Positions 1,053-55,360 of a stretch of 64,000 nt of DNA are shown here, piece by piece. The stretch lies in the NCBI GenBank assembly GCA_965202585.1, contig OZ241831.1, positions 12,524,001-12,588,000 on the forward strand, read 5' to 3'. Positions within the stretch are counted from its first letter, which is position 1, and each line of letters opens with the position of its first letter. A model generated the notes under the pieces. That model did no database searches. It was not told where the DNA came from and saw only the letters and a list, made by a program, of their open reading frames with translations. The stretch is from Thalia democratica. Lineage: Eukaryota. The position numbers and the translations under genes were made by a program.

Positions 1053-30027
<28,975 letters not shown>

Positions 30028-32248
30028 AGCTTTTTTTAAGCGAGGCGCAGCTTAGTCAGATCGTCCGGGGTCATTGAACGCCCAAAGTAAAAGCAAGGAA
30101 GTCGGTTGGCAGCCGTATGCGAAGATTAGAACACTTTGCCGCACACCAAAACATTTGTTATACTTACGTTTTTATTGACCTCAAAAAAGTGTACACCCTC
30201 CTTCTTTGCGTAACGTTTTGTTCATACAAGTTGATCGGTTTGCTTTGAAAAACTTTCTGGGCGCTTCGTGCCTTTAAAGGGTTTTCTAACGTCTTAATTA
30301 TACAACTAGATTTTACACAATTTAAAAAATTGACCCAGCTTTTTTAGGTGAAAACGTTAAGTTTTGTTATGTTATAAAAGCTTTTTTTTTCTTTTTGTAA
30401 TCAAGTAACTTATTTTAGTTTTACTGTTGCCTTGGCGAACCTTTTTTATTACGCGGGTTTATTTGAGCACATACACACGTTACATACCATATTTAGTCTG
30501 ATTTTCAATTTTCGACTCCAACCCATAGGATAATTGCCTTACAAATTACTGAGCTTTTGTTCAACATACACATTTTGTTATCAGGTCAACCTAAAGATAC
30601 AGTACAGTCTCACATTTTTACATTTACTTAAAAATTGCCTGCTATATATACGACTGTTTTCACAGTTTTCAAATCATTCAATCATTTTTCTGCTTTTATC
30701 TTTATTTATTGTTTTTAACCAGCACTTATTACTTACTTTGTGATCAAAAAAGCTAGATATGTATTGATCTATTGCTCTATATTAATAAAATATTTCTAAA
30801 AATACTTTTGTTTGGAGTATTAGAGTTATTTCATTGTAAAAAAATTTGTTTATCAGAATTCGCTTTTAACAATTAATAGCTAGTAAAATCAAAATAAATA
30901 ATAACTACAATTTTTTAGCTCTGCAATAAAAATCAATTTAAAAGAAATTTTAAAGTCGAACTAAAAATAGTTTCTTACTTAATAATTTTTTAATATAATT
31001 TTGTAAAAAATAGTTCAATGACGAAGTCAAGGAGTTATAAATGAATTAATAGTTAGTTTTTACGAATTTATAAGTTTTAAACATCAGCAAAACTTCTTTA
31101 AAAAGTAGTCTAGCATAGATAAAACTTTAAGATTTTTAGTCTAAGAATACATAGTTATACAACATAAGAAGCTACGAACAAAAAAAATCAATGAAGCATA
31201 AATATTAGATAAAACGTAAGAAAAAACAAACATAAAATTAGGTTTCTATAACTTGTTCTTAGCTAAACAAATACAAAGCAAAAGGTGCTAATACACGGTT
31301 TGGTAAACGCTTAGTTAAGACAAAGTACAAAACTTCTTTTATAAAGTCGCAAGCTACGTTGTTTAAATGAAAACTGAATAATATTAACCAGTATAATAAA
31401 CAGTATTTTGGGTAAGCATCGAAATGCTTTTTGCAAGCATTAAAAAAAATTTCATATATATATTTAACTTAATGTGTAAGTCGTTGTTCTTTAGTACGGG
31501 TTTTTATATTAAAACCTTGTTGTTTCTACTTAGTTTTTATTATACTATTATAAGATTAAAAAAAGTTGTAGTTGTCACGGAGCTGAACTGTATCTGAAAA
31601 CAATTAATACCGTATAGTAAGCCCTTTATAGTTTTTCAAAAGTTTTCTGGTCTAAAAATCGAACTGTGAAGCTTATGATAAACTTTCAAAATATTTTCTT
31701 TTTTAGATTAATGTGGTTTAATTTAGATGTATAAGTATATGTAGCGTAAATATTTATTTTGTTATATTCTAAGTATTGTCTTTATTTAAATTGAATTAAA
31801 TCAGAATTTAAATAGTTTGTATCTCTAATTGAACAGAACTACATGTGAACTATTTATTTAGCTTAAATAACATTAAAGATACTTAAAAATTACTAATTGT
31901 TATTCCAGCTACTTGAAGAGCTGGGGTTTTACGCAATCATTTAATAGCATTAGGCTTTGTTATCAAAAGATGTTAAACTACAATTGAAGCCGTTTTAGCT
32001 TTATACTGTAACATTTTATCTTCTATACAATTTAAAATTAACTATTTAAATAGTGTATATGATAAATAAAAACGTTTTTATAGCTGAACAATTTTATTGA
32101 ACTTAAATTAAATACAATAACGAAAAGATTTTAATAACTTATAGGAAGTGATTTAATACATCACTATTAAATAGACCAACACCTTGCTATAAATTGAAAT
32201 CTCAACAAAAATTATAATTTATAACTTATAGTAAAATTTTGAAATAAT

Positions 32249-33259
32249 TTACTGTAAAACACAACAACATTTGCGTTCTGGAACTTCTGCACCTCCATCA
32301 TCGACCGTTTCTTTTCCGTTTTCACATTCTTCGTTGTCAACCACTTCGTTGTCAACCTCTTCATTATCCACACTTTCTTCTTGGTTCTCAACACCTCTTA
32401 GATTATTTTCTAATTCGTTCGCTTGCTTTTTCTTCTCTTGCAGCTCGACCCACTGGTCTATTTTTTCGCTATGATTTTTCTCAGGTTCTTCCAGTTCACA
32501 ACAACCGCACAGTGTACATTTTAAGCTTTTACCTTTTCCTTTGACATTAACTTTAGCGGCTCCAGTACCTTTTGTCGTGTGTGTATCTACTTTATTCTCA
32601 TTTGGATTACCTTGCACATCAACTTCATCTTCTTCGGGAAAAGCTTGTTCTTGCTCATTTTTTTCTTCAACACCTTTCGGATTTACTTTTAAAGCCGTTT
32701 CGATTTGAAATTTCTGCTGATGAACGATATTGGCTTTAATTGAAGTACATAACAAACTATCTTGGTTTAGCTGTGGGTTTTCTACTTTATTTTTTTCAGT
32801 GGATAAGACAAGCTGCTCACTATTTTGGGTATGTTGGTCGGGTTCAAATGCGTTATTCAAGTACTGATGTTCACTCCCCGAATGAAGAACAACATCGCCA
32901 ACACGCTCCACTGATGCTGTAAGCACTTGACTCACTATTTTGCTCATTCGCGGCGTACTGTCTTCAGTGGAATCAGTCGTTTTAGATACCACTATTTTGT
33001 TAGATACGACTCCTGCAGTCCCTGAACTATCTTCATCTTCATTCACAAATCCTTCGTTTGTTTCACATCCCAATTGAGATTTGCATCCTTTTTTATCATC
33101 AGAAGCAGTATTTCCGAGAAGATCTTTGGATTGCTGCGTTGATCTTACAAGATCTTTTTCACTTGGTTGGTCAGGCACAAACGTATCTTCCGCATGCTGC
33201 GATTCTTCAATCGATTTTGAAATAAGATTTTTTTTCAAATCACTATTCATCCTAGCCAT
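32249..33259 (-). CDS. Uncharacterised acidic, low-complexity protein ending in RKCCCVLQ (CaaX plus adjacent Cys), copy 1; 336 aa from the first ATG, may have an upstream exon
   Basis: 1-kb stop-free ORF in ~25% GC surroundings; E/D/N/Q/K-rich. C-terminal CVLQ-stop. A ctaacag acceptor lies 20 nt upstream of the ATG, and the frame stays open across that leader. Confidence 0.8.
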   Translation of the reverse strand: MARMNSDLKKNLISKSIEESQHAEDTFVPDQPSEKDLVRSTQQSKDLLGNTASDDKKGCKSQLGCETNEGFVNEDEDSSGTAGVVSNKIVVSKTTDSTEDSTPRMSKIVSQVLTASVERVGDVVLHSGSEHQYLNNAFEPDQHTQNSEQLVLSTEKNKVENPQLNQDSLLCTSIKANIVHQQKFQIETALKVNPKGVEEKNEQEQAFPEEDEVDVQGNPNENKVDTHTTKGTGAAKVNVKGKGKSLKCTLCGCCELEEPEKNHSEKIDQWVELQEKKKQANELENNLRGVENQEESVDNEEVDNEVVDNEECENGKETVDDGGAEVPERKCCCVLQ

Positions 33260-34709
33260 AAAATAATTGATCAAAGTAGCTGTTAGTTAAAATTATTATT
33301 GGTAACATGGGATGTTAAGGTTGCTTATTTATGTTTATCACAACTGCATAATTTAAATAAAATTATAACTATAAGCCTAGTAATTTTACTTAGTAAACAA
33401 TTTTGAGCATTCAAGATAATAATTTATTATTGAAATTGATTTTCCACTAGATCAACTTACTTTTATATGTAAGTATAACTTCAACCAAAAACTAATGGTT
33501 TTTTTTTAAGCTATATCGTAAATTTAAGTTCTGTTACCTAAATGTTGAAGTATCATATACTATCTTAACCACTTGAAACGTTTTTTAGTCAAAATACTAA
33601 CTACAATATAAAAAAATTAAATTTAATTTAATAAGAAATTATTTCATGGACTAGTATAAATACTTTTTATTTAACAAAAAAAAATCTTAAAGTTTTTGTT
33701 CATTATAAAGAGTAAACTATAACAGAAATCCATCAACAAAATAAACTGTATGCCTTTATAAATATTTTTTTTTGATTAAACACAAAACAATATAACAACA
33801 ACTTTATTACAGCTTGACTATGTTCGTTATTCAAAAAAATATGCTTTCTTTGTTTAAACTTTGAGCTGGACACCAAAGGAATGTTTTATTGATATAAACT
33901 CAAACTGTTATTTGTTAAAATTCAATATGTTCTAAATTACTTTAAATATACACATTTAAATATTATTTTCTTTTATGTTTTCTAAAATCCTTGGTCTCAG
34001 TTTCCTTATTGTGTAAGCCACAAAGCTAAAAAACAAATTTATTTAATAAATGACCATATTCCACTTAAATTTGATACAATTTATAAAAACATAAAACTTA
34101 AAATATCTATCATAATATAATCTAAACAAGTAGTTTTAAGATATTTTTTATATTATCATGCCGTAGTATTACAGACTTATATATACACTCTAATCTTCTT
34201 AATTATAAACATATTATTAATTAATTTAAGCCGATAAGAATTCAACCCTAAAAACATGTTCAAAGGACAATACGTATATAAAAACTTTCTGATTATTGAG
34301 CTACACCAACACTAGTTTTACTTTAAATATGTTAATCTTGATAGAAAATAAATATACTATTTCCTGAATAAACTAGTATTTTTTTAACTACCTAGATGAT
34401 AAAATTTCATAACGCTTTTGTTTAAAATAATGTAAAACTTTCTGATACATACTCAAACTTTATTGAAATTATTTTAGCATGTGTTATACTTAAAATTTTC
34501 AAAAACAGCTGTAGATAAGGAACTGATGTCTAAAAGTACAGAATTTTAAAGCTAAAGATAAAGTTTTACATATAAAATGCCTACCACTATACGTTTGTTT
34601 TTTATTGAAATATATATAATTTAATTTTTTGAAGAAATTATTTGTAATCATGTTCTTTAACTATACAAAGCTATACATGTTTAAAAATGTTATGTTGTGT
34701 AGTTATTAC

Positions 34710-34819
34710 AGTTTATTTGACGATAAAAAAATGCTCAAAATATTCGGTCCTAGGACTTGGTGCACGAAGAACCTTTCGGTTATCGAATTGCACACCGCTT
34801 GGATACTTTCAACGTCTTG
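34710..34819 (-). repeat. Short interspersed repeat, copy
   Basis: Reverse complement of the 601-714 element. Confidence 0.8.
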
Positions 34820-35778
34820 TAGACTTTATTTACTTTAAGACTTTTTTGCTGCTTTAAAACCTCTATTATAAACAATTTACTTGTCATTTTTTATGAAGAA
34901 CAAACTGAAAGATTTTACTTTTCACAAACAACTTAGAAAATTAAATAAAAAAATTTAACACGTATAAAAATGTTTTAAATTAATAATGTATTAGTTCCAA
35001 ATTTGTTTAACATGAAGACAAATTTTTATTTGTTACAGCGAAAAACTCTTCTCAACAAATAATTTTCTTTACTACTTGTATTCATAAATTAACTGTAATT
35101 TCAAAGTGCATACGCATTGTCTTACTTTTAACAGTTCTTAGGTTCTTAACTGTGCTGAAGTTGGATATTGGAGTCAACAGTTTTTGATAAACTCATTAAA
35201 TTTACTTCACATTCTAATAAACAAGTTCACTTTAGCACTTTTTTCAGTTACACGGCACTTAAAAACTCAGAAAATTCATACTCTTATATAAAAATTAAAG
35301 GGATGTACCTCAGAAAATTGAAAAGTTCTACGTTTCACTAAATTGTAGTGAACAGTAAAATTGTTTTTATACTTATCATAGTGCACAGCTGCACCGATGA
35401 GAACCACTGCCTTAAACAATGCTCTATAAAAACTTATCGTTTAAGAAGCTATTTTAAATGTCACTTTTCCAAATGTATGCATCCGTGCAAAGTAAAAGTT
35501 TTTTATTGTCTACCGAATAGATATCGCAAACATGTATAACTTATAGTTTGTTTAAATGTTAATCGAGTAAGTGTATTTGAACTATTTTTATAACTTCTAA
35601 AGCTGTATAAGCTTTTAACACAATTTTGTATATATTTTTATGAGTATTTTGATTTAGCAACCATAACAACCAAGGTTATGTCATTTAATGCAAAGATAAA
35701 AAGTTATTTTTTATTCCAATAAAAAATACACCAAGTTATATTTTACTTACATTACGGAAGTACAAATTGTAAATCAAT

Positions 35779-36821
35779 ATGAAGACATACGAAGAAGTAT
35801 TCAATAAAGATTACAGCTGGTACGAGTAAGTGAATTGTATTTACTTTTATTTATAAGAAAAAAATTTAAGCTTTAAAATTGATGTATTGTATATGTTTGT
35901 AGCTCAAATGACATAGTCAGTGAGTGACCTAAGACTAGATTTTTTATGATTTCAAAAAACTACGCATATATATTTAGATATAAAATGTAGAAAAAAGCTT
36001 AAGTATCTTTAAATTATAGATTAAACATGTTTCCTTAAACTTTTATCAACTTCTGTTTAATGTACATTGTTAATTGATATCATAAAAGTCTCTATGTAAA
36101 GTACACTTTCAAGTTAGCAAAGTCTTTAAGCTTTCAATACTTTTTGTTAGCCTAATCATGTAATGTTGTAACATATAGACTCTTTCTTTAACGACTAGTT
36201 TAAGTCTTTATAAACATGAGAATTGTGCTAATAAATCACTGAGACCACTTTATTAAATCTATTTCTCTTTTTATATTACAACAAGTAAGCATTCTTTACA
36301 GTGACGTTGTTGCGTGGGAAAAGAGCCAAACGACTGAAAAAAGCTCTGACTCGGAATACCACTCTGAGAATGACAAAGTACCAGAGTTCGAAGTTCTTAG
36401 AGAAACTTTAAACAATCATAACATCGAATGGCCAGATGTTGTTGATGAAAGTGAATGCAGCAGTGCTAGCTCGTCTTTCTTCTTAGCTTCAATAACCGAA
36501 GAAAGCAATGAAAACGATCAAACCAGTGTAGATGTAGGAGAAAGGAAAGTCAATATTGCGAAAGGAAGAAAAACTGACGAGGCTGAAAAGAGGCTTGAGA
36601 AAGCAAGCAAGCTGCTAGATGATGAAAAAATTTCTTTGGCACGATTCTTGCAGATGCTGGACCCAACTGGGGAGTGGTTTCCCGAAGACTCAAAATTTAC
36701 TTTTGAGTTTGAGGAGGAAAGTATAGAAACCAACACCATCGAAATGATTATGAAAGATTTTTCTGGACCTGATTGGAGCAGTTCTTTTCAGTTTGAGTTC
36801 AATAGTGACATTGAAGCTTAA
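35779..36821 (+). CDS. Uncharacterised 188-aa acidic protein, two coding exons (35779-35825, 36302-36821)
   Basis: ATG AAG ACA TAC...TGG TAC GA|gtaagt joins tttacag|T GAC GTT... in frame. The second exon is open for 172 codons (MKTYEEVFNKDYSWYDDVVAWEKS...FEFNSDIEA*). AATAAA at 36836. Confidence 0.7.
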
Positions 36822-39800
36822 AATTTTATATTTTCAATAAAATGATATATACAAAAGTAAAGCATTGTTTAAAATAAGCTTAAATTCTTTGAATATTATA
36901 TAACCACTTCATTCAAAACAAAAGCTTTAAAACTTTTGCAATCTTATTGTTTTGAAATGTGGAAAAAACGTAAATTTTACGAAGTTTCTTGCTTACAATG
37001 ACAAACTATCATATTTGCTTTTAGTATTTGATTAGTTTTCGGCTTTAAACTCTATTTTTTAAGCCGGGTCTTTTAAAAAAACGGGCTAATTTTTGTAAAA
37101 TAAGGTTGCTTGTGGGCCACACGATTTAGAAAAATGTCTTCAAAGGGCCGAAAAAACGGAAAATAGTTGTAATAAACATCATAAAAAATACTATTCAAAA
37201 TATGAAGCTACTATTAAAAAATTAATATGTTTATATATAACTGTTCAAAATATAGATTTAATCGTTTGCTAACAAAAGATCCAAATGATCAAGTTCACCT
37301 GAATATAAATAAAAACAAACTACACAGTAATCTTCCTTTATTGTACCAATATAAGTTTCTGTGTGTTAACGAATCAACACACTTCAATTGATGAATTTGT
37401 TTATATTTGTATATATATCTATTTAGGAGTTCTGCTTACTATTACATATTTTTTTTGTAGATCAGTGTTAAGACTTTTTAGCATAAAAATATAGTTCATT
37501 ATTTTTAACTTGTTTTTCAAAATTTCTACTGTTTTAGCTTTGTCCTAGTTTGTTGATAGTTTTCTGTTCACATTTGATAACGTAAGAGAAAAAATATTCT
37601 TGTTGTGTAAATCATTTTTATATGAAGAAAGCAGTTTGTGAATTTTCGGGGTACGAATAAACCTTTCCAAAAATATGGTGTAGGAGTACCACAATATAAA
37701 GTCTTAAAACCCTAATTGCTTTTAATACACATTAATGATTTGTAGAACAATGGGTTCATAGCTTTGCAGATTAAGCACTACTGTAAAGAATATCAAGGAA
37801 TATCAAAAAAAAAATTGTTAGTAAGTGGCAACTTAAAATAAGATTTTTTTTTTTTTAATTTACTTAAAATAAATAAAACTAAAAGAACACCATTGAATAA
37901 AAAAAATCCTTTTAGGGTAAAATAAAGATTTTCATGTCAATATAGGTTTTAAAAAATTTTTTAAGTTAAATGATAAATATCTTTAAGTGTTTAAGACTGA
38001 TTATTATAGTCGTCTTAACTGGTCACAACATGGCACGCACTTCCTTTTGTTCACTATTCAGAGCGCTTTATTTCTGGAAATCTGGCAACCCTGAATTATT
38101 ACATATGTTGTTCTAATAAATTACAAATTTTCTAATTTGCATCACATCTTCAAGGCTAAACTTAACTTAAAGTTTTGTAATGGAGTACTAGATAGCATAT
38201 TTTAGTGATTTAAATTCAATTTAATGACAATTGAGTTAAGCGGTTGGTAGGAATCATATTTGCACTTGGCATTAATAGTTTATTATATATTTAATTTTTT
38301 GTTTAATAGGTAATATATTTAGCAATTTTTTCAACTGGTGATAAAATTTATACATTTTGTTGATAAAACTAAACTACAAATGGTTATTTTTAAACCACTT
38401 CAGTCTGGTTAAAAAAACTATTACAATTTTGGTCTGATCCCATAGGATAATTGCCTTACAAATTACTGAGCTTTTGTTCAACATACACATTTTGTTATCA
38501 GGTCAACCTAAAGATACAGTACAGTCTCACATTTTTACATTTACTTAAAAATTGCCTGCTATATATACGACTGTTTTCACAGTTTTCAAATCATTCAATC
38601 ATTTTTCTGCTTTTATCTTTATTTATTGTTTTTAACCAGCACTTATTACTGACTTTGTGATCAAAAAAGCTAAATATGTATTGATCTTCTACTGTATAGT
38701 AATAAAATATTTTAAATATACTTTTGTTTGGAGTATTAGAGTTGTTTCATTATAAAAAAATGTCTGCATAAGAAATCACTTTTATCAATTAATAACTAGT
38801 AACAACAAAATAAATACTAATAACATAATAATAAATATAAATTTTTAGCTCTGCAATAAAAATAAATTTAAAAGTAATTTTAATAGTCGAATTAAAAATA
38901 GTTTCTTACTATAATAATTTTTTAATATAAATTTGTAAAAAATAATTCAATGACGAAGTCAAAAAGTTATAAATTCGTAAAAACTAACTATTAATTAATT
39001 AATAAGTTTTAAACATCAGCAAGACTTCTTTAAAAAGTAGTCTAGCATACATAAGATTTTAAGGTTTTTAGTCTAAATGTACATACAAAAAAGAAGCTAC
39101 AATCAAAAAAAAATCAATGAAGCATAAATATTAGATAAAACGTAAGAAAAAACAAACATAAAATTAGGTTTCTATAACTTGTTCTTAGCTAAACAAATAC
39201 AAAGCAAAAGATGCTAATACACGATTTGGTGAATGCTTGGTTAAGACAAAGTACAAAACCTTATTTATAAAGTCGCAAGCTACCTTGTTTATAAATCAAT
39301 ATATTATAATATATTCAGTATATATCAGTATTTTCGGTAAGCATCGAAATGCTTTTTGCAAGCATTAAAAAGTTTTGTTCATATTTAATAAACTTAATGC
39401 GTAAGTCGCTTTTTTTAGTACGGGTTTTTAAATTTAAAACCTTTTTGTTTCTACTTAGTTTTTATTATATTATAACAAGATAAAAAAAAGTTGAACAGTT
39501 TTGTCACGGAGCTGAATTGTTTCTGAAAACAATTAATACCGTATAGTAAGCTCTTATAGCTTTTTTAAGTTTTTTAAAAATTTTTCAGTTTAAAAATCGA
39601 ACTATGGAGCTTATGATAAAGTTTCAAAATATTTTCTTTTTCAGATTAATGTTGTTAAATTTAGATGTGCCAATTCATGAAACATAAATTTTTATTTATT
39701 GTGGTTTAATTGAAATATTGACCTTAATTAGTTTGAAATTTAATCAGAACAAACTAGAACACTCTAACTGTAGAACTACCTGTTATAACTCGTTAGAACT

Positions 39801-40180
39801 AATATATAAGATACTTAAAAATTACTAATTGTTATACCAACTACTTCAAGAGCTGGGGTTTTACGCAATTATTTAGTAGCACTAGGCTTTGTTATCAAAA
39901 GATGTTAAACTACAATTGAAGCAGTTTTAGCTTTATACTGTAACATTTTATCTTCTATACAATTTAAAATTAACTATTTAAATAGTGTATAAGATAAATA
40001 AAAACGTTTTTATAGCTGAACAATTTTATTGAACTTAAATTAAATACAATAACGAAAAGATTTTAATAACTTATAAGAAGTGATTTAATACATCATTATT
40101 AAATAAACCAACACCTTGCTATAAATTGAAATCTCAACAAAAATTATAATTTATAACTTATAGTAAAAATTTGAACTAAG

Positions 40181-41179
40181 TTACTGCAAAACACAACAAC
40201 ATTTACGTTCTGCACCTCCTTCATCGACCGTTTCTTTTCCGTTTTCACCTTCTTCGTTGTCAACCACTTCGTTGTCAACCTCATCATTATCCACACTTTC
40301 TTCTTGGTTCTCAACAATTCTTAGATTATTTTCTAATTCGTTCGCTTGCTTTTTCTTCTCTTGCAGCTCGATCCACTGGTCAAATTTTCTGCCATCATCT
40401 GGCTCAGGTTCTTCCGGTTCACAACAACCGCACAGTGAACATTTTAAACTTTTATCCTTTCCTTTGACATTGACTCTAGCGGCTCCAGTACCTTTTGTCG
40501 TGTGTGTATCTACTATATTTTCATTTTGATTACCTGGCACATCAACTTCATCTTCTTCGGGAAAAGCTTGTTCTTGCTCATTTTTTTCTTCAACACCCTT
40601 CGGATTTACTTTTAAAGCCGTTTCGATTTGAAATTTTTGCTGATGAACGATATTGGCTTTAATTGAAGTACATAACAAACTATCTTGGTTTGGCTGTTGG
40701 TTTTCTACTTTATTTTTTTCAGTGGATAAGACAAGCTGCTCACTATTTTGGGTATGTTGGTCGGGTTCAAATGCGTTATTTAAATACTGATGTTCACTCC
40801 CCGAATGAAGAACAACATCGCCAACACGCTCCACTGATGCTGTAAACTTTTGACTCACTATTTTGCTCATTCGCGGCGTACTGTCTTCAGTAGAATCAGT
40901 CGTTTTAGATACCACTATTTTATTAGATACGATTCCTGCAGTCCCTGAACTATCTTCATCTTCATTCACAAATCCTTCGTTTGTTTCACATCCCAATTGA
41001 GATTTGCATCCTTTATCATCAGAAGCAGTATTTCCGAGAAGATCTTTGGATTGCTGCGTTGATCTTACAAGATCTTTTTCACTTGGTTGGTTAGGCACAA
41101 ACGTATCTTCCGCATGCTGCGATTCTTCAACCGATTTTGAAATGAGATTTTTTTTCAAATCACTATTCATCCTAGCCAT
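40181..41179 (-). CDS. Uncharacterised acidic CaaX-terminated protein, copy 2 (332 aa from the first ATG)
   Basis: Paralog of 32249-33259. ORF intact, only in-frame indels (3 and 9 nt), RKCCCVLQ retained. Confidence 0.8.
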   Translation of the reverse strand: MARMNSDLKKNLISKSVEESQHAEDTFVPNQPSEKDLVRSTQQSKDLLGNTASDDKGCKSQLGCETNEGFVNEDEDSSGTAGIVSNKIVVSKTTDSTEDSTPRMSKIVSQKFTASVERVGDVVLHSGSEHQYLNNAFEPDQHTQNSEQLVLSTEKNKVENQQPNQDSLLCTSIKANIVHQQKFQIETALKVNPKGVEEKNEQEQAFPEEDEVDVPGNQNENIVDTHTTKGTGAARVNVKGKDKSLKCSLCGCCEPEEPEPDDGRKFDQWIELQEKKKQANELENNLRIVENQEESVDNDEVDNEVVDNEEGENGKETVDEGGAERKCCCVLQ

Positions 41180-42169
41180 AAAATAATTGATCAAAGTAGC
41201 TGTTAGTTAAAATTATTATTGGTAACATGAGATGTTAAGGTTGCTTATTTATGTATATCATAACTACATAATTTAAATAAAATTATAACTATAACCTACT
41301 AATTTTACTTAGTAAAAAATTTAGAGCATTCAAGATAATATTTTATTATTGAAATTGATTTCCCACTAGATCAACTTACTTTTATATGTAAGTATAACTT
41401 CTTAACTAAAAACTAGTTGTTTTTTTTAAGCTATATTGTAAATTTAATTTTGTTACCTAAATGTTGAATTATCATACACTATCCTAACCATTTGTAACCT
41501 TTTTTAGTTAAAATACGAACTACAGTTTTTTTTTTTTTTAGAAATTCTTTCATGGACTATTACAAGTACTTTTTATTTAACAAAGCAAAAATTTAAGATT
41601 TTGATATTTTTAAAGAGTAAACTATAAAAGAGATCTATCTACCAAACAAATTGTATGTTTTTATAAATATAAATTTTTGATTAGACACATAACAATATAA
41701 CAACAACTTTGACTATGATCGTTATTCAAAAAAATATACTTTCTTAGTTTAAACTTTGAGCTGGAGACCAAAGGAATGTTATATTGATATAAACTCAAAC
41801 TGTTATTTATTAAAATTCAATATACTCTCAATCACTTAAAATATACACATTTAAATATAATTTTAAATATACTGTCAAAAATCCTTGTTCTCAATTTCCT
41901 TTTTGTAAAAGCCACAAAGCAAAAAAATAAATCTATTTAATAAATGACCACTTTCCACTTAAATTTGATATAATTTATAAAAACATAAAACTTGAAATTT
42001 CTAACTTGATTTAATCTTAACAAGTAATTTTAAAATATTTTTTATATTAACATGCCGTAGTATTACAGAAATATATATACACTCTAATCTTCTTAATTAT
42101 AAACATATTATTAGTTTATTAGACGCGATAAGAACTCGGCCCTAAAAACACAGTCAAAGGACAATCAAT

Positions 42170-42671
42170 GGGTAGGTGTCACTTTTGCACAAGGAAACAC
42201 TTTTTCACAAGGAGACACTTTTACACAGCGTCACTTTTGCACGCAGGGTCACTTTAGCACAAGGAAACACTTTTTTACGGTGTCACTTTTGTACGGAAAA
42301 ACTTTTGCACAGAATGAAAAAAAAAATAATTTTTTTTTAACATTTTTTTTTTGCTATCAATTTTACCCTTAACCCTTACCCTCGGTCGGTAAAGTTTAAT
42401 TTCTTTTTTGTTTTTTTTTAATTAATATTTTGTAATTATTATTTTCCTGTTCTTTTTATTAATAAGCTTTATTAGATTTTTTTTTTCTATCACTGTTACC
42501 CCTAACCCTTACCCTCGGTCGGTAACTTTTTTTTTTACTCAAATATTTTTTTTTCTTTCTGTTTATTTTTTTTTCACTCTCGTGCAAAAATGACCCCTCG
42601 TGCTAAAGTGTCCCCTCGCACTAAAGTGACGCTCGTTCGAAAGTATTGCCGTGCAAAAGTGACCCGTTCCC
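42170..42671. mobile_element. Foldback/Mutator-like MITE inserted in duplication copy 2
   Basis: Absent from the homologous site in copy 1 (about 34262-34270). Flanked by aaggacaat at 42157-42165 and 42672-42680, plus an extra caat on the left. GGG...CCC termini, inverted arrays of cacttttgcac/gtgcaaaagtg, internal (ta)acccttaccctcggtcgg repeats. Confidence 0.85.
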
Positions 42672-43091
42672 AAGGACAATACATATAGAAATATAATGTA
42701 TGCACCAACACTTGTTTTACCTTAATGGAAAAGAAACATATTATTTCCTAAATAATTTAGTATCTTTTTTAAGTACCTACATGATAAAATTTTATAACGC
42801 TTTTATTTAAAATAATATATTACTTTCTGATACATACTCAAACTTTATTGAAATTATTTTAGCATGTATTATACTTAAACTTTCAAAACAGCTGTATATT
42901 AGGAACTGATGTCTAAAATATAAAATTTTAAAGCTGAAGATAAAGTTTTACATAAAAAATGCCTACCACTACATGTTTGTTTTTTATTGAAATTTATATA
43001 ATTAAGTTTTTTTAATAAATTATTTTAATCATTTTCTTTAATCTTATAAAAACTATACGTGTTTTAAAATGTTATGTTGTATAGTTATTAC

Positions 43092-43200
43092 AGTTTATTG
43101 AATGATAAAAAACGCTCAAAATATTTGGTCCTAGGACTTGGTGCACGAAGAACCTTTCGGTTATCGAATCGCACACCACTTGGATACTTTCAACGTCTTG
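43092..43200 (-). repeat. Short interspersed repeat, copy carried by the tandem duplication
   Basis: Homologous position to 34710-34819. Confidence 0.8.
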
Positions 43201-44150
43201 TAGACTTTGTTTACTTTAAGACTTGACTTTTTGCTGCTTTAAAACTTCTATTATAAATAACTTACTTGTCATTTTTTATGAAGAACAAACTGAAAGATTT
43301 TACTTTTCACAAACAACTTAGAAAATTAAATAAAAAATTTAACACGTATAAAAATGTTTTAAATTAATAATATTTTAGTTCCAAATTTTTTTAAATGAAG
43401 GCAAAATCTTACTTGTTACAGCCAAAAACTGTTCTCAACAAATAATTTTCTTTACTACTTGTATTCATAAATTAAGTGTAGTTTCAAAGTGCATACGCAT
43501 TGTCGTACTTTTAACAGTTCTTAGGTTCTTAACTGTGCTGAAGCTGGATATTGGACTTCTTGATAAACTCATTAAATTTACTTCACATTCTGATTAACAT
43601 GTTCACTTTAGCACTTTCAGTTACACGGCATTATAAACTCAGAAAATTAATACTCTTATATAAAAATTAAAGGGATGTACCTCAGAAAATTAAAAATTTC
43701 TTCGTTTCACTAAATTTTAGTGAACAGTAAAATTGTTTTTATGCACACCATATTGCACAGCTGCACTCATGAGAACCACTGCCTTAAACAATGCTCTATA
43801 AAAACTTATCATTTAAGAAGCTATTTTAAATGTCACTTTTCCAAATGTATGCATCCGTGCAAAGTAAAAGTTTTTTATTGTCTACCGAACAGATATCGCA
43901 AACATGTATAACTTATAGTTTGTTTAAATGTTAATCGAGTAAAGTTCTTTAAATTATTTTTATAACTAATAAGGATGTATAAACTTTTAATACAATTTTG
44001 TATATATTTTTATGAGTATTTTGATTTAGCAACCATAAAAACCAAGGTTATGTCATTTAAGGCAAAGATAAAAAGTTATTTTTTATTCCAATAAAAAATA
44101 CACCAAGTTGTATTTTACTTACATTACGGAAGTACAAATTGTAAATCAAT

Positions 44151-45185
44151 ATGAAGACATACGAAGAAGTATTCAATAAAGATCACAGCTGGTACGAGTA
44201 AGTAAATTGTATTTACTCTTATTTATAAGAAAAATTTTTTAAGTTTTAAAATTTGTGTATTGTGTATGTTTGTAGCTCAAATGACAACAAAGTCAGTAAG
44301 TGACCTAAGACTAGATTTTTTATACTTTCAAAAAGCTACGCTTATAAATTTAGATATAAAAATATAGAAAAAAGCTTAAGTATCTTTAGTTTATTGTTTA
44401 AACATATTTCCTTAAACTTATTTTAACTTCTGTTAATGTATATTGTTAATTGATATCAAAAAAGTATCTATGTAAAACACACTTTCAAGCTGGCCTTATA
44501 GTTTTCAATACTTTTTGTTAACCTAATTATCTAATGTTGTAACATATAGACTCTTTCTTTAACGACTAGTTTAAGTCTTTATAAACATGAGAATTGTGCT
44601 TATTGAGACCACTTTATTAAATCTATGTCTGTTTTTATATTACAACAAGTAAAAATTCTTTACAGTGACGTTGTTGCGTAGGAAAAGAGCCAAACGACTG
44701 AAAAAAGCTCTGACTCGGAATGCCACTCCGAGAATGACCAAGTACCAGAGTTCGAAGTTCTTAGAGAAATTTTAAACAATCATGACATCAAATGGCCAGA
44801 TATTGTTGATGAAAGCGAATGTAGCAGTGCTAGCTCGTCTTTCTACTTAGCTTCAATAACCGAAGAAAGCAATGAAAACGATCAAACCAGTGTAGATGTA
44901 GAAGAAAAGAAAGTCAATATTGCGAAAGGAAGAAAAATCGACGAGACTGAAAAGAGGCTTGAGAAAGCAAGCAAGCTGCTAATGATGAAAAAATTTCTTT
45001 GGCACGATTCTTGCAGATGCTGAACCCAACTGGGGAGTGGTTTCCCGAAGACACAAAACTTAGTTTTGAGTTCGAGAAGGAAAGTATAGAAACCAACGCC
45101 ATCGAAATGATTGTGAAAGATTTTTCTGGACCTGATTGGAGTAGTCCTTTTTCTGTTTGAGTTCAATAGTGACATTGAAGCTTAA
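44151..45185 (+). pseudogene. Disrupted copy of the 188-aa acidic-protein gene
   Basis: Same exon structure (44151-44197, 44666-45185), but TGG->TAG at 44679-44681, a 1-nt deletion near 44981 (ctaGatgat -> ctaatgat) and further indels downstream. Confidence 0.8.
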
Positions 45186-46876
45186 AATTTTATATTTTCA
45201 ATAAAAATGATAAATACAGTAGTAAAGCATTGTTTACATAAAGCTTAAATTCTTTAAATATTAGATAACCACTTCATTCGAAACAAAAGCTTTAAAACTT
45301 TTGCAATCTTATTGTTTTGAAATGTGGAAAAAACGTAAATTTTACGAAGTTTCTTGCTTACAATGACAAATCATCATATTTGCTTTTAGTATTTGATTAG
45401 TTTCCGGCTTTAAACTCTAATTTTAAGCAGGGCCTTTTAAAATAACGGGCTAATTTTTGTAAAATAAAGTTGCTTGTGGGCTGCAGGATTTAGAAAAATG
45501 TCTTCCAAGGGCCGAAAAAACGGAAATTAGTTGTAATAAACAACATAAAAAATACTATTCAAAATATGAAGCTACTTTTAAAAAATTAATATGTATATAT
45601 AATTGTTCAAAATATAGATTTAATCGTTTGCTAACAAAGGATCCAAGTGATCAAGTTCACCTGAATATAAATAAAAACAAATTACACAGTAATCTTCCCT
45701 TATTGTACCAATATAAGTTTCTGTGTGTAAACGAATCAACACACTTCAATTGATGAATTTGTTTATATTTGTATGTATATCTACTTAGGAGTTTATTACA
45801 TATTTTTTTGTAGATCAGTGTTAAGACTTTTTACCATAAAAATATAGTTCATTATTTTTAACTTGTTTTTCAAAATTTCTACTGTTTTAGCTTTGTCCTA
45901 GTATGTTGAAAAGTTTCTGTTCACATTTGATACCGTAAGAGAAATTCATTTTTATAAATTATTTGTAAATCATTTTTATCTGAAGAAAGCAGTTTGTGAA
46001 TTTTCGGGGTATGAATAAACCTTTTTTTAAATATGGTGTAGGAGTACCACAATATAAAGTCTTAAAACCCTAATTGCTTTTAATACACATTAATGATTTG
46101 TAGAACAATGGGTTCATAGTTTTGCAGATTAAGCACTACTGTAAAGATTATCAAAGAATATCAAAAAATAAATTTGTAAGTAAGTGGCAACTTATAGTTA
46201 GATTTTTTTTAATTAAATTTTAGTAAAAATAAATTTGACCTTACTAAAAATAAATAAAACTAGAAGAACACTATTAAATCAAGAAAAAATAAATCCTTTT
46301 TGTGTAAAATAAAGATTTTCATGTCAATATAGATTTTAAAACTTCTAAGTTAGATAATATTATTTAGTTATAAGTGTTTAAGATTGATTATTATAGTCGT
46401 CTTAACTGGTCACAACATGGCACGCACTTCCTTTTGTTCACTATTCAGAGCGCTTTATTTCTGGAAATCTGGCAACCCTGAATTATTACATATGTTGTTC
46501 TAATAAATTACAAATTTTCTAATTTGCATCACCTCTTCAAGGCTAAACTTAACTTAAATTTTTGCAATGGAGTACTTAGATAGCATATTTTAGTGATTTA
46601 AAAATCAATTTAATGACAATTAAGTTAAGCGGTTGGTAGGAATCAGATTTGCACTTGGCACTAATAGTTTATTATATATTTAATTTTTTGTTTAATAGGT
46701 AATATATTTAGCAATTTTTTCAACTGGTAAAAAAATGTAATACATTTTGTTGATAAAACTAAACTACAAATGGTTATTTTTAAACCACTTCAGTCTGGTT
46801 AAAAAACTATTATAATCTTGGTCTAAAAATACTTTTTTTTAAATTAGATAGTTTAAAATTCATAATAGATCTGGAA

Positions 46877-46991
46877 AAGACGTTAAAAGGTATGCAAGTG
46901 GTGTGCAACTTGATAACCGAAAGGTTTCTTTGTGCACCAGGTACTAGGATCAAATATTTTGAGCGCTGTTTTTGTCGTTTAATAAACTATA
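46877..46991 (+). repeat. Short interspersed repeat, copy
   Basis: Matches 601-714; lies about 50 bp beyond the right end of the duplication. Confidence 0.8.
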
Positions 46992-47470
46992 AGATAGTTT
47001 AAAAGTGATCTAAACTATACAGCAAATAGTGTTAGACCAGTCAATTAATAAATTTCTACTAACATTTTTTAATTAAATACTAAATTATCTTTCACAAATA
47101 GTCTTAATTGTATTGATTTAACATTCATAAACCAATAAGATACATATATATAGACATTTTATTTAAAAAGCTAAATTTATTACAATTTTTTCTCTCCCTT
47201 CTTTAAAAGTTAAAACTTATTTTTCTAATTCTACCAATGTATCAATTTGCTCAGCTACTTAAGAAACAAATAAGTTTTTTTTTCTCGGCTTTATTTTTTT
47301 TAACTTTAAGCATTTTTTAATCTAATCTAAGCAAAACATGTTTAAACTGTAAGAAAAGCAAAAAGTAAACTTATATTAAGGAGATCTTAAACTTCGTTAG
47401 ATTATTAAGTTGGTTTTAATTCAATTTTGTTACTTTTAACTTTTATCAAAATTAAATCTGTTTTAAACTA

Positions 47471-52362: not shown

Positions 52363-53911
<1,549 letters not shown>

Positions 53912-54691
53912 TTACAACAATTAGAAAAAGCTGCAAAAATTTAGAGTTAAATAAATTGTTGAATTTAAAAACTTATTAAATATGTCAAAGTGAAGCTAGT
54001 AAACAAACTTTTAGAAGATAATCAGTGTCTTAAAACCATTAAAATAAATAGAAGCTAAAAACTTTCAGTCTAGTTTAAATATCAACATTAACAATAAGTT
54101 TATTTTTTTGATTAATTAAGCTTTATATCACATACAAAAACTTGGTTTTATTGTTTATCATTCCTTTTTGATGTTTATCACTGCGTTCGGGACAAGTCTG
54201 AAGTTTGTCATTAAAAAATTTTGAATTAGATAAACTGATTTTTTTTATCAAATTAACTAAAATTTTAGCTTGATTCACTAAATATCAAAGAGTTTTGAAA
54301 TACTTAAATTGTAAAACAGTTGCATTACTTGAAATACTTTAGTCAAACCCTTTTTAAAGATTGAGGGCAGAACTCATTTTTACACAAAACATGTGCTTCT
54401 TATCATATTTATTTTGAATCAAAATGGCCAGTATTATCTAGAAATTATTTTCAAAAATATTCTTTGTATTAAAATTTATTGTTTATTTTATATATAGGTG
54501 GGTAATTGTTTAACTCTTTCTTTGATTTGATCAGAAAAGCAATTTTATAAAAAATACTCTAGTAACTTGTACATACTGCTAATTTTTTTATTTAAAATCT
54601 ACTTTTAAAACCCAACGTTTAAAAATAACTCAACTTAAAAATAATTGGTTAGATCCATTTACTATGTCTCACTATTAAGGTAATAAATTAA

Positions 54692-55360
54692 GGGCATAGG
54701 GGGGGTAAACACCCTTTTTTGGGTTTTTACCTTATTTTATATAGTTTTTACTAAGCTACAAGATGCTTTTTACAGATTTTAAAAATTTAAAATAATTTTT
54801 GAGATATAGCCGGTCAAAGTTGGAGGCAACAATAGGAACCTTATGGGAGGCGCAAACTACAACAGCAAATAACTAGAAATCACTAAAAATCTATCTTCTA
54901 CGTTTTTAGAGATAACTACTTCAAATTTTCAGGAAATGTTCCTTGCAATATTTAGAAAATTCTGTCGGAACGGAATTTAAAAAAAATAAAAATTTTATAA
55001 CAAAAAAACTAAAAAAAAACTGTTTTTTTTGTTTATTTTTTATATAAAATTTTTATTTTTAATATTTTTTAAATTCCTTCCGACAGAATTTTCTAAATAT
55101 ATTAAGGAACATTTCCTGAAAATTTGAGGTAGTTATCTCAAAAAACGTAGGAGAAGATAGATTTTTAGTAAAACAGTCTATTTTTGCCGTTTTAGTTTGC
55201 GCCTCCCATAAGGAACCTGTTGTTGCCTCCAACTTTGACCGGCTATATCTCAAAAATTATTTTGAATTTTTAAAATCTGTAAAAAGCATCTTGTAGCTTA
55301 GTAAAAACAATATAAAATAAGATATAAAACCAAAAAAGGTTGTTTACCCCCCCTATGCCC
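54692..55360. mobile_element. 669-bp near-perfect palindromic MITE with TTAA target duplication (Kolobok-like termini)
   Basis: TTAA at 54688-54691 and 55361-55364; starts gggcataggggggg and ends ccccccctatgccc. The two halves are reverse complements around a centre near 55021. Confidence 0.9.

Follow-up and report, generated by a model that had tools for sequence, protein, structure and literature searches.

In the 64-kb window (the whole 64,000-nt stretch of Thalia democratica DNA analyzed here), a real and fairly young tandem segmental duplication of ~8 kb probably copied two unrelated genes that were neighbors by chance; the gene for a protein with a C-terminal CaaX box was kept in both copies, whereas its partner was lost from one. 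The duplication itself, the lesions in the lost gene, the rates at which the copies have changed, and the size of the family to which the partner belongs were all observed directly. We infer expression of either gene, and likewise the reason for retention of the CaaX gene, from patterns in the DNA. Coordinates of the features are collected in Table 1.

Table 1. Features of the duplicated segment (window coordinates).
Feature	Coordinates	Strand	Description	Evidence
Tandem unit 1	30522–38438		7,917 bp	Self-BLASTN, repeat finder, three-way breakpoint alignment
Tandem unit 2	38439–46824		8,386 bp	Self-BLASTN, repeat finder, breakpoint and unit alignments
Unit start segment	30522–30746	.	99–100 per cent identical to 38439–38663; adjoining DNA 13–25 per cent diverged	Sliding identity
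Interspersed repeat	42166–42720	.	~550 bp with an 18-nt minisatellite; only in unit 2, between both genes	Unit alignment, tandem repeats
AATAAA signal	32093–32098	-	~150 nt past the CaaX stop	3' flank 96–99 per cent identical between units
CaaX gene copy 1	32249–33259	-	Single coding exon, 336 aa	ORF, ortholog alignment, physico-chemistry, AF2
AG acceptor	33280–33281	-	Candidate spliced-leader or 5'UTR acceptor	Conserved with flanks across species
TATA-like box	33461–33469	-	Presumed CaaX core promoter	Conserved block, found in units 1 and 2 and the Tara ortholog
CaaX gene copy 2	40181–41179	-	Intact, 332 aa, ~92 per cent identical to copy 1	ORF, copy alignment
Partner family promoter	35656–35746	+	Putative; 31-nt motif (35656–35686) and TATA-like box (35736–35746)	Alignment of 13 family 5' regions
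Partner, unit 1, exon 1	35779–35825	+	ATG and 15 2/3 codons, then GTAAGT donor	Paralog peptide identity
Partner, unit 1, exon 2	36302–36821	+	172 codons and stop; AATAAA at 36836–36841	Family alignment
Partner pseudogene, unit 2, exon 1	44151–44197	+	Tyr>His in a peptide otherwise (nearly) identical in the paralogs checked	
Partner pseudogene, unit 2, exon 2	44666–45185	+	TGG>TAG at 44679–44681, -1 after 44981, +1 at 45148	

A tandem duplication downstream of a calcium-channel gene

The gene upstream of unit 1, in which pore, S4, and IQ-motif exons are readable, encodes an L-type calcium-channel alpha-1 subunit, and its last open frame stops at 30025–30027. An earlier note on this DNA had described a tandem duplication of an ~8-kb unit beginning 495 bp past this Cav1 stop, and self-BLASTN bears out both its extent and its starting point (30027 + 495 = 30522). 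The two units are adjacent, lie in the same orientation, and are 89–92 per cent identical overall, with direct blocks at 30503–34271 versus 38421–42165 (89.1 per cent identity) and at 34337–38435 versus 42721–46824 (91.6 per cent identity). Unit 2 is longer than unit 1 because of the insertion of an interspersed repeat, for which the genome as a whole yielded 131 scored matches out of 4,671 first-look candidates. The three breakpoints (30521/30522, 38438/38439, and 46824/46825) have in common only ~12 nt of imperfect microhomology, and a novel junction joins unit end to unit start between the two adjacent direct copies, as in a tandem duplication. A microhomology-mediated event just downstream of the channel gene probably created the duplication.

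Alternatively, the units could be diverged haplotypes of one locus that were misassembled in tandem, given that tunicates are highly heterozygous. To compare the window with public reads, we used Logan contigs, which are short and come from non-RNA runs. The contigs listed include no bridge over 38438/38439, and the depth of copy-specific contigs is about one-half or one-third that of shared contigs (X1, 59 versus 115–180; X3, 48–51 versus 134–155), which also fits two alleles; being relative to shared contigs, these depths are compatible with a haplotype artifact or with copy-number polymorphism. However, the similarity of only ~12 nt between unit end and unit start means that an overlap-based false join has no substrate, and the window contains no N bases and no gap. 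In three independent public runs, contigs begin precisely at 38439, which is what a de Bruijn branch point with two real, merging left contexts would produce. Contigs specific to unit 2 (with 0–2 differences) are present in two differently labeled samples, and in both samples the two sequence types occur at similar depth. Non-coding divergence of up to 25 per cent, a 550-bp insertion, and three lesions would also be extreme for alleles. Finally, the unit DNA is present in only two copies in the 802-Mb assembly, and a stray haplotig is therefore absent. We consider misassembled haplotypes an improbable explanation and treat the units as true tandem copies. Apparent variants over CaaX copy 2, which might be taken for polymorphism, are mostly copy-1 bases from copy-1 contigs or collapsed mosaics, and we rejected them as such.

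Divergence between the units is mosaic, and therefore gene conversion acts on them as well. The unit start segment, also found in only two copies in the assembly, includes a ~200-bp tract without any difference between the units, and its near identity suggests that it is likely a recent gene-conversion or crossover tract. We detected no RNA-structure signal in this conserved segment (z-scores of -0.1 and +1.6), no match of an exact 24-mer from the unit start among JGI metagenome contigs, and no tRNA or Rfam family inside the unit. The right half of the unit shows 3–10 per cent divergence between copies, and indels in non-coding unit DNA amount to ~10 per kb. Adjacent direct copies, breakpoint microhomology, asymmetric gene fate, a repeat inserted afterward, and tracts of inter-copy conversion are all features of young tandem segmental duplications, from which the present case differs in nothing notable; both of its genes happen to be lineage-restricted.

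The CaaX gene

Only three ORFs of at least 300 aa are found in the window, namely the two CaaX ORFs and beta-tubulin, and the chance of a 336-codon open frame at 28 per cent GC is ~1e-13 (a rough estimate from base composition). The CaaX ORFs are therefore not random. An ortholog of 245 aa, found on a Tara Oceans contig, has the same start context, the Cys cluster described below, and a stretch of eight C-terminal residues identical to those of both copies. Across species, it is the second ATG of copy 1, at 33250, that is conserved as the start codon. In a three-way alignment, the presumed promoter block, conserved across species, sits ~200 bp upstream of the CaaX ATG, and the candidate acceptor precedes the first ATG by 21 nt. 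Between the units, both the 3'UTR and the 5' flank of the gene are conserved. A GTAAGT that follows the TATA-like box was considered as a 5'UTR donor and dropped, as it is not conserved in the ortholog. From the 1-kb ORF in AT-rich DNA, the Tara ortholog, and the conserved promoter block and acceptor, the CaaX gene is evidently real.

The gene is absent elsewhere in its own genome, with both copies at this locus only, and a search with the full-length protein found the Tara ortholog as the sole relative. With both copies as queries, Pfam returned no match at E-values up to 1 (only weak sub-threshold noise), and exact-product look-ups retrieved no equal database protein and no contig. There was likewise no usable match in an ESM Atlas feature search, no match to the C-terminal 130 residues, and no relative in a protein-pattern scan of JGI metagenome contigs. 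As judged from these searches, the CaaX gene is lineage-restricted.

Between the two copies there are 25 substitutions and two indels, both in frame (of one and three residues), in agreement with the earlier description of copy 2 as intact, with about two dozen amino-acid changes and only in-frame indels. Their product (~37 kDa; pI 4.55–4.61; GRAVY ~-1.0) has no hydrophobic or transmembrane segment (top 19-residue hydropathy of 0.96). In the AF2 model of copy 1 (mean pLDDT of 41.2), 290 of the 336 residues have a pLDDT below 50 (~85 per cent predicted disordered), and the lone confident helix spans residues 262–293. Both copies end in an Arg-Lys basic cluster, Cys-Cys, and then CVLQ and the stop; an internal Cys cluster, flanked by basic residues, is located at residues 248–254 of copy 1.

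A putative paralemmin-like membrane anchor

The CVLQ terminus fits the farnesyltransferase-substrate pattern, with Cys at -4 and aliphatic residues at -3 and -2. By established enzymology, a CaaX box with Gln as X favors farnesyl over geranylgeranyl transfer, and a C-terminus in which basic residues and two Cys precede such a box is classically a signal to add one farnesyl and then two palmitates. Judging from this motif, the CaaX protein would be lipidated and located at a membrane. Its C-terminus would carry a farnesyl and two palmitates, and the second Cys cluster, 80 residues upstream of the C-terminal one, would add further palmitates. Both anchors would pin the 30-residue helix to the inner membrane face, and the 250-residue acidic tail would hang free in the cytoplasm.

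Similar design is found in the paralemmin family (PALM1–3 and palmdelphin; PF03285), whose members are acidic, hydrophilic proteins of ~40 kDa that have no membrane-spanning segment, consist of short conserved cassettes with poorly conserved linkers between them, and end, as both salp copies do, in a CaaX box that two Cys and a basic cluster precede. Prenylation and palmitoylation of this C-terminus have been demonstrated for paralemmin, which depends on it for its effect on cell shape (PMC2148134; PMC3405040). Paralemmins are reported only in vertebrates and from one lancelet fragment, and not in Ciona (PMC3405040). The salp protein departs from paralemmins in its additional, internal Cys cluster and in having its whole coding sequence in one exon, and it shows no sequence similarity to the family (no match at E-values up to 1 to PF03285, the paralemmin domain with its 11-residue paralemmin motif); the likeness is an analogy of design, not membership. 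H-Ras and Xlcaax, which PMC2148134 cites as carrying both farnesyl and palmitoyl, also have a terminal CaaX box with cysteines just upstream, but the salp protein lacks a GTPase or other recognized domain. By analogy only, the most likely role of the CaaX protein is that of a membrane protein anchored, like paralemmin, by farnesyl and palmitoyl groups.

The partner gene, its family, and its pseudogene

The partner gene in unit 1 is intact and consists of two exons that encode an acidic 188-aa protein. Although it had been taken for an orphan, it belongs to a family of about 30 genes that has 34 matches in its own genome, mostly open; at least 25 intact members lie outside this locus. Tara metagenome contigs provided 27 relatives, and all family relatives examined are unspliced calls on metagenomic DNA. 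With this family of small acidic salp proteins, the partner shares the two-exon structure (a conserved exon 1, a ~480-nt intron, and an exon 2 of ~172 codons), the promoter motif, and the 3' flank. Specifically, the 16-residue exon-1 peptide matches that of 11 paralogs fully or almost fully; it is 100 per cent identical in seven paralogs and 93 per cent identical in three more, where it precedes exon 2 by ~480 bp, and the exon-2 protein is 71–79 per cent identical to paralogs from its own genome. The repeated family unit corresponds to positions 35622–37195 of the window, its own conserved putative promoter included; the partner is a dispersed member, and each member would have a compact promoter to itself. 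The dN/dS values of the unit-1 partner versus its paralogs are 0.20–0.33, and those among paralogs are ~0.23.

The copies in the window differ from the rest of the family in that they form their own subfamily (stem length of 0.086), lack a nearly invariant Glu-Cys-Cys motif, and are situated ~15 Mb from the main family cluster. The absence of this motif and changes at other conserved positions suggest that the unit-1 partner, too, may be drifting. Pfam and Atlas searches with the partner found nothing, and a profile of the 34 family members, compared to 1.84 billion representative proteins, gave 17 matches, all of them family members or fragments. The AF2 model of exon 2 has a mean pLDDT of 54.5 and, like that of the CaaX protein, is too poor and therefore unfit for fold searches. 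From these comparisons, the family, which has no public name, appears to be restricted to salp-like DNA.

The unit-2 partner is a pseudogene, with both disabling lesions and a loss of constraint. The nonsense codon and frameshifts noted earlier are present as one TGG>TAG change, one -1, and one +1. The unit-2 copy has accumulated 18 derived changes (15 of them non-synonymous) versus seven in unit 1, and thus has evolved ~2.6 times faster; the corresponding tree branches are 0.042 and 0.014. Because there are many paralogs, the unit-2 copy is redundant, and it would have lost constraint on that account and become a pseudogene.

Are the two genes a module?

The earlier note proposed that the divergent genes form a co-regulated module, and a functionally coupled pair would indeed be compatible with their head-to-head arrangement in both units, with nothing recognizable between them, and with the acidic and disordered character of both products. 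The distance between the ATGs, which had been put at ~2.5 kb, is 2,520 bp. Bidirectional-promoter pairs have starts less than ~1 kb apart, a shared promoter, and conserved pairing, whereas here a separate, conserved putative promoter block precedes each of the two genes, the blocks lying ~2.2 kb apart, and no other locus in the genome shows this pairing. The CaaX gene occurs only here, and no other family member has a CaaX gene beside it, yet more than 25 family members lie at other sites, where two of them often face each other head to head (in one pair, with ATGs 414 bp apart). Unit 2, moreover, lost the partner without losing the CaaX gene, and the two proteins have no sequence relation (a probability of 0.2 per cent in a profile comparison of the CaaX protein with the partner family). 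Functional coupling is highly improbable on this evidence, and the CaaX gene and its partner appear to be chance neighbors.

Probable selection and gene conversion after duplication

The opposite fates ascribed to the two genes are reflected in their derived changes. Both CaaX copies are open and, when polarized with the Tara ortholog, show 12 (copy 1) and 14 (copy 2) derived changes, versus the unequal counts and the three unit-2 lesions of the partner. The dN/dS between the CaaX copies is 0.53 (P-value of ~0.04–0.08), and versus the ortholog it is 0.53–0.58; both copies would be kept by weak purifying selection equal to that since the split from the ortholog. Each single selection test on copy 2 gives a P-value of only 0.04–0.08.

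It could instead be argued that CaaX copy 2 is redundant and has stayed open through its youth and repair by conversion, and that the contrast with the partner reflects luck and lower conversion at the partner. Such repair fits the mosaic divergence, including the perfectly identical 200-bp tract, and the position of the CaaX transcription unit (31905–33550) in an island of 95–99 per cent identity (1–5 per cent diverged), with flanks that are 13–25 per cent diverged. The synonymous divergence between the copies (dS of 0.07) is also below that of the flanks, Logan contigs across the CaaX CDS mix copy-1 and copy-2 states, and the probability that 43 neutral changes would leave a CaaX copy without a stop is 0.07, which is not negligible. 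However, synonymous divergence varies rather little along the CDS (0.04–0.10) and non-synonymous divergence is uneven, which points to selection and not to conversion tracts. Over codons 1–225, dN/dS is 0.35, a constraint that equals or beats the long-term value; codons 225–300, with a dN/dS of 1.1, show no constraint and speak against selection there. Moreover, the derived changes are symmetric between the copies, conversion spreads lesions as readily as it removes them, and the partner decayed even though it lies in the right half of the unit, where divergence is likewise low. We regard redundancy with conversion repair as unlikely.

Selection to keep the second CaaX copy, as proposed earlier, is thus moderately supported by the DNA comparisons: the dN/dS of 0.53, the 0.07 probability of an absent stop under neutrality, the indels (only two, both in frame, versus ~10 per kb in non-coding DNA), and the conserved 3'UTR and 5' flank speak for it, but gene conversion between the units can also keep a copy intact. 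Occasional gene conversion between the units would help to keep both CaaX copies open.

Implications

The 75-residue segment between the two putative anchors is the only part of the CaaX protein with dN/dS near 1, and there copy 1 has changed and copy 2 is ancestral. A bolder reading, which we offer as a speculation with rather little likelihood, is that the CaaX protein is a tunicate invention that converged on the paralemmin design and added a second palmitoyl cluster, that its copies are specializing in this inter-anchor segment, and that the neighboring family is an undescribed, fast-expanding class of salp proteins whose N-terminal peptide serves as a functional tag.

Otherwise, the locus represents ordinary genome evolution and opens no long-standing question. 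It provides a clean, datable case of neighboring genes with different fates after one duplication, in which a lineage-specific gene would be kept in two copies and a surplus member of a large family discarded. It also brings to light two protein families that appear limited to salp-like DNA and for which billions of public proteins include no detectable relative; one of the two, the CaaX family, carries a very clear membrane-anchor signal.

Tandem duplication and its flanks

The window is AT-rich (~28 per cent GC) and contains no Ns. In a self-BLASTN of the window, 30503–34271 aligns with 38421–42165 (89.1 per cent identity) and 34337–38435 with 42721–46824 (91.6 per cent identity), both matches being direct and collinear, and a repeat finder gives the same register of the two units. 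Three-way alignment places the breakpoints at 30521/30522, 38438/38439, and 46824/46825, confirming the claim of the earlier note that an ~8 kb tandem duplication begins 495 bp past a calcium-channel stop codon. An imperfect match of ~12 nt is all that links the left flank to the end of the unit. The upstream gene, judged by its pore, S4, and IQ motifs, is an L-type calcium-channel alpha-1 gene. The only ORFs of at least 300 aa in the 64-kb window are those of the beta-tubulin gene and of the two copies of the CaaX gene. A 679-bp palindrome (54687–55365; 88 per cent identical to its own reverse complement) is located ~0.8 kb from the beta-tubulin start codon, on its 5' side.

Coordinates of features in and around the duplicated units. 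Identities are between the two units, from a sliding window in unit-1 coordinates.
Feature	Coordinates	Strand	Remarks
Unit 1	30522–38438		Direct tandem copy
Unit 2	38439–46824		Direct tandem copy
L-type calcium-channel alpha-1 gene	30025–30027 (stop of last frame)		Upstream of unit 1; pore, S4, and IQ-motif exons legible in frame
CaaX copy 1	32249–33259	minus	ORF, 336 aa
CaaX copy 2	40181–41179	minus	ORF, 332 aa
Partner exon 1, unit 1	35779–35825	plus	GTAAGT donor
Partner exon 2, unit 1	36302–36821	plus	Product 188 aa, pI 4.2
Beta-tubulin gene	52366–53893	minus	Downstream of duplication
~155-bp interspersed element	37236–37390; ~45600–45752		In both units
~550-bp repeat	42166–42720		Unit 2 only
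~115-bp dispersed repeat	600–714; 34706–34820; 43088–43201; 46877–46992		
Unit start	30522–30746		Identity 99–100 per cent
Band after unit start	30747–31900		Identity 75–87 per cent in most windows
CaaX transcription unit	31905–33550		Identity 95–99 per cent, save the fast coding segment
Band beyond CaaX transcription unit	33553–34270		Identity 80–88 per cent in most windows
Right part of unit	34338–38438		Identity 88–98 per cent

The units were compared with Logan contigs of public runs, none of them from RNA. Contigs from three runs start exactly at 38439, which is the branch point expected if the unit-start segment is truly preceded by two different sequences. Two differently labelled samples contain unit-2-specific contigs with 0–2 differences, and in one of these samples both copy types have similar depth. 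The sequences joined at 38438/38439 neither overlap nor are separated by a gap. Although none of the contigs listed bridges this junction, these observations make it quite unlikely that the duplication is an assembly artifact. In two of the public runs (X1 and X3), the contig depth of the shared unit start (38439–38650) is ~3×, not 2×, that of single unit-2-specific contigs, as a contig-to-contig ratio without a single-copy baseline; this may be due to haplotype-split contigs or copy-number polymorphism.

Several repeats populate the region. The ~155-bp element, which matched neither tRNAs nor Rfam, is extremely numerous: its summed contig depth is ~700,000 in two runs, compared to ~200 nearby, and over 2,000 first-look candidates were counted genome-wide. 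The ~550-bp repeat, an abundant interspersed sequence that unit 2 gained between the two genes after the duplication, contains an 18-nt minisatellite, has 4,671 first-look candidates genome-wide, and is MITE-like in its inverted-repeat ends, both of which match other genomic copies in either orientation. One inverted copy of the ~115-bp repeat lies 53 bp past the right end of the duplication, and the same repeat adjoins relatives of the partner gene at other loci (L007 and L010).

The CaaX gene and its product

The 802 Mb genome holds two copies of the CaaX gene and none elsewhere. Between them there are 25 substitutions and two indels (one and three residues), both in frame, and the second copy is intact, as the earlier note had it. 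Among 5.8 billion public proteins the gene has a single relative, a protein of 245 aa encoded on a Tara Oceans metagenome contig of 1,636 bp (PRJEB4352); the best local match has 57 per cent identity and covers 43 per cent of the query. The start of this Tara orthologue corresponds to the second ATG of copy 1 (33250), and the two proteins have in common a number of short cassettes, a cluster of internal Cys, and a C-terminal octapeptide made up of a basic pair, two Cys, and CVLQ. Conservation extends to the 5' side, where a block contains a TATA-like box ~200 nt before the CaaX ATG and a candidate AG acceptor (33280–33281) lies 21 nt before that ATG. An AATAAA is found ~150 nt 3' of the stop codon. 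Within the coding sequence, a 15-nt tandem repeat (32329–32362 and 40252–40280) encodes repeated acidic pentapeptides (Val-Asp-Asn-Glu-Glu-like) close to the C-terminus.

The CaaX protein is acidic (pI 4.6) and strongly hydrophilic, lacks a hydrophobic segment, and has no match in Pfam or the ESM Atlas. AlphaFold gives pLDDT <50 in 290 of its 336 residues and a single confident helix (residues 262–293), flanked by the two Cys clusters. A CaaX box that ends in Gln is expected to receive a farnesyl lipid. The second Cys cluster, bordered by Lys and Gly, resembles known multi-palmitoylation sites. In paralemmin, a tail that combines a basic cluster, a pair of Cys, and a CaaX box has been shown experimentally to direct prenylation, palmitoylation, and membrane binding (PMC2148134), and such a tail has the same role in H-Ras and Xlcaax (cited in PMC2148134). 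We therefore propose that the CaaX protein would sit peripherally on the inner membrane face, anchored at two points, from which its long acidic disordered tail would extend. It is an analogue of paralemmin in design but not a member of the paralemmin family, because the paralemmin Pfam model gives no match and no paralemmin has been reported from tunicates (PMC3405040).

The partner gene belongs to a family

The description of the two genes as an orphan pair does not survive for the partner. A six-frame search found 34 family matches in its own genome, mostly open, which cluster on the same chromosome (at ~5.46, 27.04, 27.82, 28.14–28.29, and 29.03–29.06 Mb); a few lie on two further chromosomes. 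Marine metagenome contigs carry 27 relatives (53–80 per cent identical), and the one whose origin was traced shares its Tara sample with the CaaX orthologue. The confinement of relatives to marine metagenomes fits a source animal that is marine and planktonic. A profile of the 34 sequences recovered family members and their fragments, and nothing else, from 1.84 billion representative proteins; it revealed no relation to the CaaX protein, and the partner had no match in Pfam or the Atlas.

The repeated family unit comprises only 35622–37195, in which ~150 bp of promoter precede the two exons with their intron, followed by the 3' flank. A 15-residue exon-1 peptide is 100 per cent identical in seven paralogues, 93 per cent in three, and 80 per cent in one more. 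A TATA-like box is conserved upstream of family members, and a 31-nt motif (35656–35686, ~95–120 nt upstream of the ATG) is near-invariant in the family promoters (loci L002–L012) and includes TTATGTCAT, a candidate transcription-factor site. The conserved peptide and compact promoter suggest that the N-terminus may serve as a short functional tag and that family members may follow one common regulatory programme. In the Tara Oceans relatives P0020 and P0023 (also P0021, P0022, and P0025), an in-frame insert of ~27 residues in exon 2 repeats the exon-1 peptide, or such a peptide is found at the end. Exon 2 has a median dN/dS of ~0.23 across the family; for that of the partner, AlphaFold predicts a helix pair (residues 87–118) at low confidence.

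At locus L004 (G000:C7:28273818-28277342), two family members stand head to head with start codons 414 bp apart. Orientations alternate in the main cluster (28.26–28.29 Mb), and the family therefore seems usually to grow by inverted duplication. Because the CaaX gene and the partner have separate promoters ~2.2 kb apart and are paired only at this locus, and because one of the two partner copies has already been lost, they are probably chance neighbours, contrary to the proposal of a co-regulated module.

Fates of the duplicated genes

The unit-2 partner carries the reported nonsense codon (TGG>TAG at 44679–44681) and frameshifts (one nucleotide deleted after 44981 and one inserted at 45148), as well as a Tyr>His change within the conserved first exon. 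When polarised by ten paralogues, it has 18 derived changes (15 non-synonymous), compared to seven in unit 1, and its branch in a maximum-likelihood tree is longer (0.042 versus 0.014). Hence, the unit-1 partner is constrained and the unit-2 partner is drifting. Full functionality of the former is not certain, judging from its lack of a near-invariant Glu-Cys-Cys motif and changes at other conserved positions. In the CaaX gene, derived changes are symmetric (12 and 14, against the Tara orthologue), and the reading of opposite fates holds.

Between the CaaX copies, dN is 0.038 and dS is 0.071 (dN/dS = 0.53; 0.53–0.58 against the Tara orthologue), with a synonymous excess at p = 0.04–0.08. By segment, dN/dS is 0.35 in codons 1–225, 1.1 in codons 225–300, and 0.24 in the last 36 codons; in the fast segment, copy 1 has changed and copy 2 holds the state of the Tara orthologue. 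The coding sequence has two indels, whereas non-coding DNA of the units has ~10 per kb. In a simulation with the local mutation spectrum, 43 neutral changes created no stop in the CaaX gene with a probability of 0.07.

Divergence between the units is a mosaic. The perfect 200-bp tract at the unit start occurs twice in the assembly and no more, and has no RNA-structure signal. We interpret the mosaic as tracts of gene conversion or unequal crossover, superimposed on a duplication whose age exceeds that implied by the coding divergence. Conversion therefore accounts in part for how well CaaX copy 2 is preserved. Along the CaaX coding sequence, however, synonymous divergence is fairly even whereas non-synonymous divergence is uneven, which argues that selection on the protein acts as well. 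Selection to keep a second CaaX gene is plausible but unproven. Overall, the locus reflects ordinary duplication dynamics of two lineage-restricted genes.
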